Under the pieces are notes generated by a model that did not search any database, had not been told where the DNA came from, and saw only the letters and a list, made by a program, of their open reading frames with translations. 64,000 nucleotides of DNA from the NCBI GenBank assembly GCA_038496445.1, contig JALMLS010000404.1, forward strand, positions 62,001 to 126,000, read 5' to 3'. The DNA is from Trichosphaerium sp. ATCC 40318. Lineage: Eukaryota; Protista; Tubulinea. The position numbers and the translations under genes are program-made. Positions 31,727 through 38,900 of the stretch are shown here, piece after piece (the stretch's first letter is position 1; each line of letters starts with the position of its first letter).

Positions 31727-32674
31727 TTAAGATGTCTTGTACATCGTAAGGTTTACAACATTGCTTGTAACAGTTGAGCAATGTCCATAAACAACCTTGT
31801 TACCCCTAGTGTTATAAACCCTTATATGTGAATCCTTTAAAGTGTTGAGTTTTACGAATACTTGGAGAGGAAACACATCTGGTGTCTCATCACAAGCAAC
31901 CATCACTTCAGAGATTTTGCCTTGAAGAGATAATGTACCAGGAGGTATTTTAGACTGCTGCAACGCTAGAAATAATCCTCTTAATGGCTTTAAGTTGTCA
32001 AAAAGTAAAGGTATCTCAAATGTCTGTCTATCTCCTGGTTGCAGAATACGAGCAAGTCTATCTAGTTCAAAATATTCACGTTCAATCTTGTAATTTTGGA
32101 ACAACTCACCAGGATTTATGACAAGAGGTTTCCAAATATACACAGCACCTCCACCTTCAATTCGCTGACAATCATCAAGCCTTGAACCAGTACCAAGGTG
32201 TACTGTCTCTTCCGTCGTACCAATATTATGAAGTGTAAGTGTGAATGTTATTGTGTCGCCTTTGTGAACATGGGTCTTGTCACAACTCAACTCCGAGATG
32301 ATATTTGAACACAATCTGTTTCGATACTTCTCTTTCCACGTGACTGCATTTAAATTATACAAAAGAGTAGGCCCATAATACCTACAATATGACAATTGCT
32401 GATTTAAAGCAAGTGCGATGTGTTTGTGGATACCAGACTCTATTTCTTCAGCATCAAGACCCCATTTCTGATGATACAAATGACGATAAATGTAATCTGA
32501 CGAGTTTCGTATCATTTCGCACAGATAATGGTTTGATTGTTGTAACGAAGCTAAATCTTGCCATGAAAGGTCATTACTTACAATAATATGTTGTAGTATC
32601 TCGATTGGAAGCGAAAACAACTCTATGACTTCCACGCATAATGTATCAACACGTGCAAGCCGTTTAGGTGTCAT
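31727..32674 (-). CDS. F-box + Ig-like protein, family copy 4 (mosaic)
   Basis: Intronless 315-aa ORF, convergent with copy 3. Confidence 0.88.
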   Translation of the reverse strand: MTPKRLARVDTLCVEVIELFSLPIEILQHIIVSNDLSWQDLASLQQSNHYLCEMIRNSSDYIYRHLYHQKWGLDAEEIESGIHKHIALALNQQLSYCRYYGPTLLYNLNAVTWKEKYRNRLCSNIISELSCDKTHVHKGDTITFTLTLHNIGTTEETVHLGTGSRLDDCQRIEGGGAVYIWKPLVINPGELFQNYKIEREYFELDRLARILQPGDRQTFEIPLLFDNLKPLRGLFLALQQSKIPPGTLSLQGKISEVMVACDETPDVFPLQVFVKLNTLKDSHIRVYNTRGNKVVYGHCSTVTSNVVNLTMYKTS

Positions 32675-32979
32675 TTGAACTTTAAATAATTATAATTTGG
32701 GCAATCAGTTTTCACTGAGCGACACAGAAAGATTTTTGACAAATAAACAAAGGATTGGTTTTTATGGTTTTATTTTTTTGTACAGGGTTAGGCAACATAT
32801 AAAAGTAAAGAATATTCTGCCTCACATGTATCATGATCCAATATTCGAAAAAGGATAAGTAGTAGAGAGGGCGAAAATCGTATTCTTTTGTGTGTAGAAA
32901 AAATACCCAACAAATATCATTATTATTTCTTTTTTTGTTCTTGTTTTTTTTTTTTTCAGTTCTTAGGCCTGGTGTGATG

Positions 32980-35900
32980 CTAAGATAGGATATCCTTTAA
33001 AGCCTGTGTAGAAGAGATATTAGAATTTGAATAAAACCACATGGGAACTAAGAAGCTGAACTTTTCTTTCAGAAAAGAAAAAAAGTTTTTTTTCAATATA
33101 AAAAGTATGGTATGCTCTTACCTCATATTTCTCGGCGTATGTCTTATAGTACTCTTCGTTATTATTCTCCTTACTTAGATAATCTTTTATGGTAACACCA
33201 CTTGCTTTGTATAGCTCAGTAAACTTATTTACATCCTAAACAAACACGTTAGAAACAAAAAAAACTCAAAAAAAAAAAAAAAAAAATAGTTCAAGGAATT
33301 TATGGCTTGGCATCTACGGCCTTGCTTTGACAACTCAAATAAAATGTTACTTATAAGATATACGTACTGTTAGCTCAATAATCTTCAAAAATGTTTCAGA
33401 GGCGATTTTCTCAGCAAGAGATCTTGATTCGATTACTGATGTCAAAGGCGCCTTCAAATCAGCTAGAGGTACACCTCCTGATACAACAGAAGTTCCAAGG
33501 AAGTTACCAATATGCTTAGGTGCCAAAGGATAATCAATAACAACATCTTCAATAGTCTCAATTGTGAGAGATAACCTAAGAAAAAAATAAGAATAATTCA
33601 AAGAAAAAAATCAAGCGGATCTTTTTATCCAATCCTACGTACCCACTGACGACGTCTTTGGCTGATAATAATTTCTCACTAAAGAAGTGCTCCATGAGAC
33701 CAACAAGTAATTTACGTTTCTCAGGTTTCTGGACAATGCCACACTCAAAGAATTTCATAGCAACACGTCCATGTTGATCAGGTGATTCAAGTTCTTGTAC
33801 ACAAAGTACAGCTTCCTCCTTTTCGTAACTAAGAAGATATTCTTCAAGGATGAGTTCGATCTTCTTATCAAGTTTTGTAAAGTCGACTTTCTATAACAAA
33901 GGTAAGAAGAAAGAAACCAGAGAAGAAGAAGAAAAGTCAATTTGTTTTCAGAAGTTAAGTTTGTTTGAACGAATCTTCGCAAGACAACTCACCTTTGCCT
34001 CAACCTTTGGTGCTGGTGCTTGAGCTTGTTTGTTAGGTGACTGTGCAGGTCTGTTTTGGTTGTTATTTCCTCTTTGGTTATTACCACCGTGCTGTTTCTT
34101 TGAGTTGACTTGTGGAGAGCCTCTGTTCTTTTTACGATTATTTCTGCTCCTTGAGTTGCTTGTTTTGAATTCATATTTGTTCTGCACAGGTACTCTACCA
34201 CCACCGCCGCCACCACGGCGATTGTCGTTATTTCTGTTACGTCCACGATTACTTCTAAACAATTTATAAGCAAGGTGAATCTCAGAGTAAATACAAGAGC
34301 CAAAAGTGCAAAAGAACTCCAAAAAAAGTACTTTTTCAAAAATTTTGTTGAAGATTAATCGTACGTTTTGGTGCTGACTGTGTTCCATCCGTCATCTGAT
34401 CTTCCACCAGATTTAGATAAATTACCAGAACGACCGCTTCCTCTTGATCTATTACCACGACGTCCTTTATTACCGGATGTTTCCCAATCTCCAGCACTTC
34501 TATTCAATCTACCACCGCCACCACGGCCTCCTCTTTGGTTGCGTGAATTACGTGGTGAGTACGAATTATTACGGTTATCTCTTGGAGATCTATAATCTCT
34601 TGGAGATGATTGAGCAGATGACCTTGATTGAGTGGACGCTGGTTTGCCTAAAACAAAGGTTAGACCAAGAAAAATTCAAAAAGATTCGCTTTGTTTTCTT
34701 TTACCTTTTTCAGCCCAACCACGTTTGTAAAAGTCAAGGGTATCCATTAACATGTATTTCATACGTGAGTCTAATTTATCGCTTGTTGACAAATGTTCTA
34801 CAACCTTAACATAGTTTTGGATCTTTGTAGGATCTCTAAGGACAAAAATTAGCAAAAGAAAAGCAACAGTTGCAAACAAACAAAAAAAAAACACGTTTCA
34901 TTATCAAAACGAACCTTTTTTGTAGTTTTTTACCAGTAAGTCTCAACAACACTGACATGAGTTCAATAGAGCGCGCAACAGGTGCCTCCAAGTCACCAAT
35001 AAGTGTTCTCAATACGCTGTGGATTACAACATCTGGAAGCATCTCTTTTAAGTACAAGTTACCAACGAATTGGACATCTTTAAAAGAGTGAAGGAGGGTT
35101 AACTTTTCTTCTTCAAAAAAAAATCGGACTATGATTGACTTTTGTGTCCAAAAAAAGTTGCATAAAATCAAGAGGATACTGCCAAGGCTTCTACGTGTAT
35201 TCTTAAATGCTACTTCTTCTTTCTGTGCGCTATTCATTTCTTCAGTAACCTTATATTTTGGTTCTTTAGCACGATCTTTGAATTCATGCTCGCAAGAGCC
35301 AATGAGCAATCGTCTAAAGTCCTATACCAACGCGTAAATATTAATGATTCTACTCGCTTCAAAGAAAACAAACTACGTACAATAGGGCGCGCGTTTTCAA
35401 CTTTAAACACTGGAAGACGTTGTGATAGAATTTGACAAAGATGAGCGTAGATTTCACCAAAGTTTGGTTCTTCAATAGCCTTTTCAAAAACAAGACCTAC
35501 CAGACCCTAAACAAATACAGTGAGTACTCTTATCTACTTTTATAAAACGTACCTTAAGTGGTGCTGGGCTCTTAACTTGTTTTTCGGCCAACTCAATGAC
35601 TTGGTTTGTCAATTTCTGAAAGTTAGCTTTTGCAAGCTTATTAAGGATTCTAAACAGTTAAATAAGCTTTTTTGAACCCTTTTTGGAAACTTTGACGCAC
35701 ATATTGACATCACGATAGAGAGTTTGGTATTTAGCAACATTTTCTTCACTCTCATCAGCTTCCCAACGCCCTTTGACATTGAGTTTTGGTTTCTGAAAGG
35801 AACGTAAGTAAAAAAAGATGCACTACGCGCAAATAAAAACGGTTGACTTACAGGCTTTGGAGGTCCTTTTGGCTGCCTTGGCTTTCTGTTTTGTTTACCA

Positions 35901-36216
35901 GCACGTCCATGACGACGTTTCTCATTCTTAGGTCCTACAAAGCGTAAACTTACAAAACCAGAACAAAACCACAGGGTAGAGGATAATACAACGTACGTAG
36001 AGCAAATTTGGTGTTGAAACCTTCTGGTGTCTCTTTACAATGTGCTAACTACATAATGCATAAGTATTACGAGTACATACGGTAACCTATGTACGTCTTT
36101 AAATGAAAGCAAGAAATCAGTCTTGTAAGTCTTTTTCTTATTAGGATCTTCAGGTTCTTGTTCTTGTTCAACAGCAACAACATCGCTTGAAGATGAAACT
36201 AGGTACACAGATGTTC
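32980..36216 (-). CDS. EIF4G: eIF4G-like region: eIF4E-binding motif, MIF4G, RS/RG-rich linker, MA3 domain (multi-exon)
   Basis: YKTDFLL (YxxxxL-phi); ILNKL..NFQKL; VFEKAIEEP.F..IYA.LC; FRRLLIGSCEHEF; RRSLG..FVGNLY; MA3-like LEEYL..KEEAVLCVQEL and DVVIDYPLAPK. Confidence 0.9.
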
Positions 36217-36319
36217 CTAGATAGTAGTTTTAGGCAAAGCAATAAAAAAGTTGGAATTACACTTCGTTTATCTGTTCAGTACAAGTCTATTTAACATCCA
36301 AAAAGATAGTGTTACGTAC

Positions 36320-38900
36320 CTTGAGTCAATTTTGCTACAGCAGCGAAAGAAGTACGGTTGCAAGCAATACCATATTCTCTAGCTAGATCGACAATATTAC
36401 CGTCCAATTCACCCGCTTTAGCTAATAAAGAGTTAGTTTCAATCCAAAAAAAAATACTAGTCTACAAAATCAAAAATAACACGCTAGACGCATACACGAA
36501 GCATACAAAGGTATGTAGCGCTATAAATTTGCAAAATTCAATGATTTTGAATTTACTTTTGGAGCGATTAAATAGGCTTGTACGCACATTCATCATCTTG
36601 TTCTTCTTGTATATCGTAAATACGCTCATTTGCAGCGATGTAATGTAGAATTTGTCCTTCAGTTATCTCGGCTTTATCAACCATGACGGTGAGCTCATGA
36701 GTCAATTTTTCCTTTCCTTGAGGTATTGTAAGCATAATTTCAATTTTGAATAAAATGGAAACCATCAATCAGTGAATTTCAGAGAAACGAAAAGCAAAGA
36801 CTCAAATAGTAATGTATAAAACAGTGTAGTCGTACCTTCATCGTCTAAAGGTGGGAATGTAATCTTTAGGGTAACTGGGGACTCTTCAGTAGGAATTCTA
36901 GTCAAGAAACCCCAAACAATAGCAAGATCTAAATGCGAATTAATACCCTTAGCTTGGCTGTAAAGAGCAAATATGATTTCGAGAGTTCAGCTAAATGAAA
37001 AAAAATTGTAGAATCTTTAACAATAATTATGTACCTCCACGATAAAAGCTGGATATTGTTTCAGACGATTCTTTGTACATTACGCCAGTCTTAAAGCCTG
37101 AGTAGTCAACAGATACTTCAGCAAAAATAGCTTGCAAAGCACGCTCAACTTGGCGCATAGCCTTATCTAGGTTGTTTCTTTAGTTAAATCTAAGCTCTAC
37201 AAAAAAAAAATACTCACTTTTAAGTTCTTCCTCAGATGAAGCATCAAAAACGAACTCTGGGTATCCACAAGCGCTCTTAACGATTGAATTGAGCTACACG
37301 AATCATAGTTAGAAAAAACGTACTACTTGCTCTAAGAAAGAAAAAAAAAATGTCATAAAAACACGTACAACAAACGTGTTAGTAGCACTACCAATGGCTA
37401 GGGTAAAAAAATTGCCATTGTGGTTCTCAACAGGTTCATGTTCCTCATTTTCGTCAGTTTGATACTTCTCAACAACGGAAATCAAAGCATCACTATCAGA
37501 CACTTGTCCACTTGAAATAAGGTAGAGCTGACGCGATTTTACTGTTTTCTCTGCAGGCGCTAGTTTATATACTTCCTCTAGTCCAACGTGAAGGTCTCTG
37601 AGGTAAAGTGTGAGCATTAAATCGAGCCACTAGGGTAGTTTTTAGTACCTGTGACCTTGCTCGATTGCAGCAAGCATTTTATCATTAGCATACTCTCTAG
37701 CCTTTTCTATATTCTCTGTTGAAGCCAATACGCTCTTATCAAAAGCCATGGATAGTTTGGAACCCAATACGATAACATTGAATTGCACCTGAAGAAAATA
37801 TCGTTAGTACAAAGATTCTTTACTAAAAATGTCAAAAATGTAGCTGGTTTTGCAAACATTCGCGTAAAGTTTCACGCGCGTAGCGGCTGCGAAAAACATT
37901 GTAAATAGAGCTTACTTGATCATGCTTAGTCAGTTCATCAAGAGCAGAGTGTAGAGCTTGTTTAAAAGAGTCTAAATTAGCCTTGTAGGCATCCACTACG
38001 AATAAAATTTCGCAAGCTACAGTTTGTACTGGTACGGCATCTGTCTTGAAGCAGAACATGACAGCAACCTTTTCGCGTCTAAATTCGGATTTTAAAACAA
38101 TGTAAGGAAAATACATTCAAAAAAACGGAAATAGATTTGTGAGATGTAACAACAATAGTAGTTCAGTGTACATACCTTTCGCCAGGGAATTTCTCAAGGA
38201 AACAACCAGGAAGCTTTTTATCTTCGCTTTGCTTCCAATTAACCAAAATACAGATATCTGCGTCGCTTAGTGCGTTTGTTTCGCCTTCTTTTGGTTTTTC
38301 CAATGATAAAGTTCCTTTCGCCGCATCACTGTTTTCAAATACAATAGGGTGCGTAGGCGATGTCACAGCTTCAATATCGCAAAACATGTCCACCGACAAT
38401 TGGACATCAAGACCATAGTCGATATTCTCGCCACCATCTTCCCTGTCGCCTACATAACTGCGAGGAGACACAGTTGTTGGTAAAACAAGGCGTAATCCTG
38501 TTTCACCTTCCAAGTACAGTTCAGAGACAAAAGTGATTTGTACGGATAGTACATCACCCACAATATCGTCCAAGCGAGCGATAAGTAGATCTGGTGAGTC
38601 TGCAGTGAGCTCTGCGCTGATATCGTGACCTGTCACTTCCTTGTACTTTTTCAGCGCTTCTTGTCTGTCCTCTACCTTACTGATGATTTTGTTATCGTCT
38701 AAGGCTATCTGGAAGTCCGTAATGATACCAAGGTCATAAATTGGAAACTTGAACACGGCCGATTTGGCATCGGTCACTGTGTATCGCTGGGTGTATGTTA
38801 TTTGAGCAGCGAGGTTTTGTACTGTCCCAGTAATTGAAACATCCTTCAAAGGAATAGGATCGTTGTTAATTCGCCATAGATTAGACTTTACCGTGTGCAT
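36320..38900 (-). CDS. VIT + vWA (VWA5A/PARP4-type) region, apparently spliced in frame to the eIF4G region
   Basis: VIT motifs IPLKDVSITGTV..AQITYTQRY..AVFKFP and LRLVLPTTV.PR; vWA strands ILFVVD and FFTLAIG; C-terminal IVDLAREYGIACNRTSFAAV. Confidence 0.8.

Follow-up and report, generated by a model that had tools for sequence, protein, structure and literature searches.

We have analyzed a window of 64,000 nucleotides (nt) from the genome of Trichosphaerium sp. ATCC 40318 (assembly GCA_038496445.1, contig JALMLS010000404.1, positions 62,001-126,000 of the forward strand). All positions given below are those of the window, which is eukaryotic in character, with a G+C content of about 36% and short GT-AG introns. 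Its short introns and protist genes do not resemble human DNA. The minus strand from 38900 to 32980 very probably contains a single gene of 24 exons. It codes for a 1311 residue paralogue of the translation initiation factor eIF4G with a VIT-vWA head, which would act as a cap-complex scaffold. In cap-dependent translation, eIF4G is the central scaffold, and regulatory and mRNA-circularising contacts are attached at its N-terminus.

The gene model is based on coordinates only: each exon has been translated singly, and split codons have been handled apart. Evidence on this gene comes from single exons and from relatives in other organisms; domain scans and searches used one exon at a time, and the fold was predicted for a relative. 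The ATG at 38900 opens the VIT-vWA reading frame, which reaches exon base 36320. All 23 introns are GT-AG, with lengths between 46 and 166 nt (median 79), and nine of them, intron 9 included, have a GTACGT donor. The coordinates of the different features are collected in Table 1.

The junction between the two halves

A preliminary description of this DNA had proposed that the VIT-vWA part is spliced in frame, from a donor at 36319 to an acceptor at 36217 or 36199, into the exon with the YKTDFLL motif. On re-reading, these coordinates are exact. The last vWA exon reads ...IVDLAREYGIACNRTSFAAVAKLTQ, with 36320 as its final base, and the intron follows from 36319 (aag|GTACGTAA). Two AG acceptors are available, ending at 36217 and 36199, both of them phase 1 and in frame with this donor. 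The length and the donor of intron 9 are indistinguishable from those of the other introns in the exon model. Comparison with the relatives described below favours the 36217 acceptor. The other one would remove conserved residues: the skipped TSVYLV aligns to TVIVS in P0167, KIVLLA in P0152 and QVILVS in P0004. A junction will be in frame by chance in about one of three cases. The case for a fusion rests on collinear homology to the fused proteins of other organisms.

We have considered whether two adjacent genes are found here. The VIT-vWA gene would then end unspliced at the TAA in 36314-36312, an independent eIF4G gene would follow, and the in-frame junction would be the one in three coincidence just mentioned. 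The unspliced frame does end cleanly (...AKLTQGT*), right after the conserved TSFxAV motif, and genes are tightly packed, with the next ATG about 306 nt past the eIF4G stop. This arrangement is nevertheless highly improbable. The frame of exon 10 is shut upstream by a TAA (36232-36230), 13 nt above the first acceptor. It had been stated that the eIF4G exon has no ATG of its own, and this extends further: exons 10-15 are without Met, and this half has its first in-frame ATG within MIF4G, in exon 16. An eIF4G gene on its own would therefore lose both the eIF4E motif and half of MIF4G. The residues which follow the acceptor are homologous to the linker of the relatives, which encode the same junction contiguously, in one case in a single exon. 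The total of 1311 residues also fits the length of these relatives.

Two candidates for an independent eIF4G start have been rejected. The sole ATG in the gap (36312-36218) reads nine codons to a stop. On direct reading it has a possible donor of phase 0, incompatible with both phase-1 acceptors, to neither of which it can be spliced in frame. An ATG|GT which exon 9 has in another frame is ruled out by the same phase problem. In the vWA frame, exon 9 has no Met.

Fused proteins in other protists

The VIT exon (245 residues) was compared with 1.84 billion cluster representatives, and the best matches are P0001 (35% identity), P0002, P0003 and P0004. According to Pfam, P0002 (1087 residues) contains VIT, VWA_3 and MIF4G, and P0004 (1319 residues) contains the same domains plus MA3. 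The four domains are also present in P0167 and P0168 (1371 residues) and in P0152 and P0158 (1379 residues). P0004 is a complete open reading frame (ORF), as called by Trinity/TransDecoder, from the testate amoeba Pyxidicula operculata (EukProt record EP01125).

Four samples have contigs of 4.3-4.5 kb, four in total, on which the ORF of P0167 is uninterrupted, with some 50-90 nt before the ORF and 140-310 nt after it, which are the sizes of an mRNA. The P0167 contig L020 may be compared with L024, which is part of a 541-kb genomic contig. They are 97-100% identical in blocks, separated by 13 gaps of 49-143 nt within the coding region. All 13 gaps are bounded by GT...AG, so L020 is the spliced mRNA of the L024 locus. 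The junction stretch of L024 (...NYTSFFFNDKATQTVIVSHYND...KKKKVYDLEFMLRYQ) lies within one exon, at cDNA positions 1733-2079. The end of vWA and the eIF4E motif cannot be parts of two genes there.

Three multi-gene contigs (10-11.5 kb) carry P0152 as a single ORF without interruption. The split gene calls in its cluster break inside MIF4G, never at the junction; P0159, for example, has VIT and vWA but no more than the first 70 positions of MIF4G. On the contigs themselves (L028, L029 and L030), the called genes of both strands are all long uninterrupted ORFs, and the spacers are very short. On L028, the end of a minus-strand call (4397) is close to the start of the fused gene (4404). ELAPOR1-like, START, TNFAIP8 and tubulin genes are among the neighbours. 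These contigs correspond either to an almost intron-less and very compact eukaryotic genome or to merged transcripts.

No further fused members are found among the matches listed in word-index protein searches with the whole of P0167, with its eIF4G region and with the three-member alignment. In the ESM Atlas there is no large cluster combining VIT with MIF4G, and no NCBI- or UniRef-sourced protein among the matches has the fused architecture. The fused members come from EukProt, JGI and Logan, where pieces of them are labelled "hypothetical protein" or "translation initiation factor 4G".

Collinear exons and a common origin

The exons of the window were added as separate fragments to an alignment of P0167, P0152 and P0004. 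Most of them, 21 of 24, align singly and in order to P0167 (residues 5-1369). No match in P0167 was found for exon 11, and exons 12 and 23 have only stray short ones. Identity to the three relatives is 27-40%, which corresponds to a deep divergence, and the lengths are comparable: 1311 residues in the window, 1319, 1371 and 1379 in the relatives. At the junction, the end of the last vWA exon (...TSFAAVAKLTQ) faces ...TSFFFNDKATQ of P0167, and the start of exon 10 (TSVYLVSSSSD) faces TVIVSHYND in P0167, KIVLLASEAD in P0152 and QVILVSSTD in P0004. After this start, exon 10 contains an acidic stretch, KKK and then the eIF4E motif, collinear with the relatives.

Several introns are common to the window and L024. 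Two of them, after P0167 residues 309 and 423, are phase 0; two others, near residues 487 and 561, are phase 1; another one, at 728.67, is phase 2, and the last intron coincides within one codon. The common positions and phases fall on both sides of the junction. L024 has no intron matching the one that the window has at the junction itself.

In a maximum likelihood tree built on the exon-1 region, a single long branch (support 100/100) unites the window with P0167, P0152 and P0004 and sets them apart from 47 stand-alone VIT-vWA proteins, with the caution that two of the four fused rows have an unusual composition and one row has a long branch. The architecture is conserved in at least three other protist lineages, and in at least one of them at the mRNA level. 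The preliminary description had proposed a one-gene fusion, and this holds: The exons are collinear, in order, with the fused proteins of three other organisms. These data support a real, conserved architecture and not a pair of neighbouring genes.

Retention of intron 9

It had also been suggested that retention of intron 9 might work as a switch, producing a free VIT-vWA protein. The reading on which this was based is correct: the retained intron gives GGT ACG TAA, with the stop at 36314-36312, after two extra residues. The switch itself is unsupported. Introns 3, 6, 9 and 19, four of 23, lead to a stop within four codons if retained, in intron 6 also after two residues, so a quick stop does not make intron 9 special. 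In its donor, its length and its acceptor it is like the other introns. Since L024 has no intron at this place, any switch would not be conserved. A real fusion, combined with regulated retention of intron 9 or with internal polyadenylation, is an improbable source of free VIT-vWA protein, even if the intron is placed exactly at the domain boundary and has A-rich stretches which, on direct reading, could act as poly(A) signals. A retained intron so far from the 3' end would normally trigger nonsense-mediated decay.

The VIT-vWA head

Exon 1 matches the Pfam VIT domain (PF08487) with 47.8 bits, well over the cut-off of 26.5, and its N-terminus aligns from residue 4 to P0167, P0152 and P0004. 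No hydrophobic signal is visible by eye at the N-terminus. The C-terminal region of the head ends in a TSFVAV-type motif, as VIT-vWA proteins do.

An AlphaFold2 model was obtained for residues 1-600 of P0167 (L020:50-1849), using a 50-row alignment, with a mean predicted local distance difference test (pLDDT) score of 84.6 and a predicted template modelling (pTM) score of 0.86. The top Foldseek match of this model is ITIH1 (6FPY; E 6.5e-31, about 630 columns). The second one, from the flagellar microtubule doublet of Trypanosoma brucei, is a VIT-vWA protein (PDB 9e5c, chain 4s; E 2.4e-25, 16% identity). The matches which follow include the vWA folds of ArnAB, Sec23/24 and integrin beta.

A characteristic feature of all fusion members is the replacement of the three elements (DxSxS, GGT and TDG) of the metal ion-dependent adhesion site (MIDAS). 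In place of DxSxS, the window has DAYKA (exon 2) and the relatives DSAQQ, DCALP and DAATI. In place of TDG, the window has SSG (exon 4) and the relatives TTA, TSG and SNG. In the 47 stand-alone VIT-vWA relatives, DCSGS, GGT and TDG are kept at about 90% or more.

The eIF4G half

Homology identifies the C-terminal half as a genuine eIF4G: in P0167, this region matches protist and plant eIF4G with values up to 3e-81 and 40-44% identity over the aligned part, and the MIF4G domain of P0167 scores 128.8 bits in Pfam. In the window, exon 21 matches MA3 (PF02847) with 44.4 bits (cut-off 23.2). The eIF4E motif is found in the same position in all of them: YKTDFLL in the window aligns to YDLEFML in P0167, YPTDFLL in P0152 and YDRSFLL in P0004. 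No W2 (HEAT-3) domain is found in the fused proteins, and contig C7 has the sole W2 match of the genome. W2 is present in metazoan-type eIF4G, it is not universal. No region binding PABP can be placed, because the N-terminus is replaced. Among the matches listed, none of the eIF4G relatives retrieved with the eIF4G region of P0167 has a VIT domain, and seven eIF4G relatives whose N-termini are long showed no VIT when scanned with Pfam.

Features of the locus

Table 1. Coordinates of the gene in the window and of its main features.
Feature	Position	Strand	Remarks
Whole coding region	32980-38900	-	24 exons, 3936 nt, 1311 codons plus TAG; all exons have an open frame in the phase needed
Exon 1: start codon and VIT domain	38176-38900	-	Pfam VIT PF08487
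Exons 2-9: vWA without MIDAS and ITIH-like C-terminal region ending ...NRTSFAAVAKLTQ	36320-38078	-	Collinear with P0167 residues 254-598
Intron 9 (domain-boundary intron): 103 nt, phase 1, donor GTACGTAA	36217-36319	-	Exon model
18 nt (TSVYLV), skipped if the acceptor ending at 36199 is used	36199-36216	-	In frame
Exon 10: acidic linker, KKK, putative eIF4E-binding motif	36095-36216	-	Aligns to P0167 residues 597-642
YKTDFLL, canonical Y-x4-L-hydrophobic eIF4E-binding motif	36107-36127	-	Direct sequence reading
Exons 13-18: MIF4G (HEAT-1)	34705-35792	-	Pfam per exon; collinear with P0167 residues 701-954
Exons 19-20: linker rich in Arg, Gly, Asn and Ser, including RGG runs	33993-34647	-	Translation
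Exons 21-22: MA3 (HEAT-2)	33368-33890	-	Pfam; aligns to P0167 residues 1182-1322
Stop codon TAG	32980-32982	-	Exon model; C-terminal ALKDILS aligns to ALKTILLP of P0167

Two other introns deserve a comment. Intron 8 (36422-36587, minus strand), directly before the last vWA exon, is the longest of the gene, with 166 nt, and 6 nt further downstream there is a second in-frame acceptor, which ends at 36416. Nothing credible was found in the introns, intron 8 included, when the locus was scanned with Rfam and for tRNAs. Intron 16 (35078-35179, minus strand) has 102 nt, a multiple of three, without any in-frame stop. Its retention would add 34 residues within MIF4G and would not truncate the protein. 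The spliced reading agrees with the homologues (RRSLG-N-VQFVGNLY compared with KRMLGNINFVGELY).

The next gene on the same strand codes for an F-box protein. Its ATG is about 306 nt past the eIF4G stop (32674-32980, minus strand), so the 3' untranslated region of one gene and the promoter and 5' untranslated region of the next are tightly packed.

Genome context

A second, canonical eIF4G is found on contig C81, at about 226500-230700 of the minus strand (loci L001, L018 and L019). Its MIF4G is about 37% identical to that of the window, and MA3 is present. Its N-terminal ORF has 563 residues of low complexity, rich in Pro, Glu, Lys and Val, with its own eIF4E motif, YSRNFMM, at the end. Beside this canonical copy, the fused gene is an extra paralogue. 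The VIT(-vWA) family is large in this organism: more than 20 contigs have VIT-domain exon matches, at least 28 in all, and the contig of the window is the only one of them which also has a MIF4G match. In the genome, exon 10 and the MA3 exon match only themselves, they are single-copy.

Duplications are common in this genome, as this second eIF4G and the numerous VIT exons indicate, and a 5'-truncated eIF4G copy might have landed behind a VIT-vWA gene, giving a decaying or unexpressed chimera found in this genome only. Such an origin is hardly credible for an intact ORF of 1311 codons with 23 intact pairs of splice sites. The same architecture, with intron positions in common, is found in three deeply diverged relatives (27-40% identity), and the VIT regions of the fusion members form one clade.

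Points to be weighed

Several observations weigh against the single fused gene. Splicing at 36320|36216 in this organism is something we infer from the exon model and the relatives, and exact DNA patterns of the spliced junction and of exon 10 had no match among metagenome contigs. The P0152 contigs may be genomic or transcript-derived. VWA_3 stays below the Pfam threshold in the relatives (24.5-25.2 bits, threshold 27). MIF4G is also under its cut-off of 30.8 on single exons of the window, with 21.6 and 26.1 bits, because the domain is split over six exons. The summed per-exon scores of the eIF4G half are 289 and 280 bits for the fusion-type proteins and about 267 for the canonical ones, a small margin. 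Finally, binding of eIF4E and eIF4A and the role of the VIT-vWA head are suggested by analogy with known proteins.

As for the vWA domain, the fold match of the P0167 model settles the predicted fold of the head despite the sub-threshold Pfam scores. Exons 2-9 of the window are collinear with this region of P0167, so the assignment may be extended from the relative to the window.

A possible function

The fused protein may be described as an eIF4G in which about 600 residues, folded as an ITIH-like VIT-vWA module that has lost its MIDAS, stand in place of the usual long disordered N-terminus. Splicing of the 103 nt phase-1 intron (36319-36217) would join both halves. After the head, the predicted order is a short acidic linker, YKTDFLL, MIF4G, an RG-rich linker and MA3, with no W2. 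In known eIF4Gs, MIF4G binds eIF4A, eIF3 and RNA. From what is established for eIF4G, the fused protein would bind eIF4E through YKTDFLL and eIF4A through MIF4G and MA3, forming a cap-complex scaffold. The head would take the place of the PABP- and RNA-binding N-terminus, and the protein would work beside the canonical eIF4G.

vWA domains without MIDAS are known as docking surfaces in Sec23/24, Ku and TFIIH p44. Speculatively, the head might be a metal-independent docking surface which ties the eIF4E-mRNA complex to a partner or a structure. A more specific proposal, rather doubtful at present, is that the MIDAS-less head tethers the eIF4E/eIF4A cap complex to the cytoskeleton, to vault-like particles or to membranes, or that it replaces the closed loop mediated by PABP.

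Comparison with known systems

Human eIF4G1 and eIF4G3, plant eIF4G and eIFiso4G, and yeast Tif4631 and Tif4632 resemble the fused protein in having an eIF4E motif before MIF4G, an RG-rich linker and MA3. However, their N-terminus is disordered, with PABP- and RNA-binding elements, while a folded VIT-vWA of some 600 residues is found here and W2 is absent. ITIH1 (6FPY), VWA5A and PARP4 share with the head the succession of VIT, vWA and a TSFVAV-type C-terminal region. The 47 stand-alone relatives keep MIDAS, whereas the fusions have lost it and are joined to a translation factor.

Specialised eIF4G paralogues are found beside the canonical one in other organisms, such as eIF4G2 (DAP5/p97/NAT1) and the kinetoplastid eIF4G1-5. 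DAP5 and its kin are, like the fused protein, extra paralogues with an altered N-terminus, which on established knowledge suggests a specialised initiation branch. DAP5 lacks the eIF4E-binding motif, whereas the fused protein keeps it and gains a large folded head. The VIT-vWA protein of the T. brucei flagellar doublet (9e5c, chain 4s) is an intracellular docking piece on a large assembly and offers a precedent for the module in a structural role within cells. It has no eIF4G part, however, and it resembles the fused head in fold only, with 16% identity.

The preliminary description considered this architecture new for eIF4G. Our full-text literature search agrees: No paper on such a fusion was found, nor any paper linking eIF4G or MIF4G with VIT or vWA. 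A survey of eIF4G architectures across eukaryotes makes no mention of a VIT-vWA fusion (PMC5862402). To judge from this search, the VIT-vWA::eIF4G architecture has not been described for eIF4G. Gene calls made at the exon level, or in prokaryote style, split the gene, which makes the architecture invisible in current databases.

In summary, a conserved eIF4G paralogue whose N-terminal region has been swapped for a MIDAS-less VIT-vWA module, with the eIF4E motif, MIF4G and MA3 kept, suggests a manner of directing the cap-binding complex that has not been studied so far. The fusion also gives a defined molecular context to the intracellular VIT-vWA module, poorly understood in VWA5A and PARP4. 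If the head does work as a tether, or in place of the PABP-mediated closed loop, these protists would have a second branch of cap-dependent translation, targeted spatially or selectively, with no counterpart in animals, fungi or plants.

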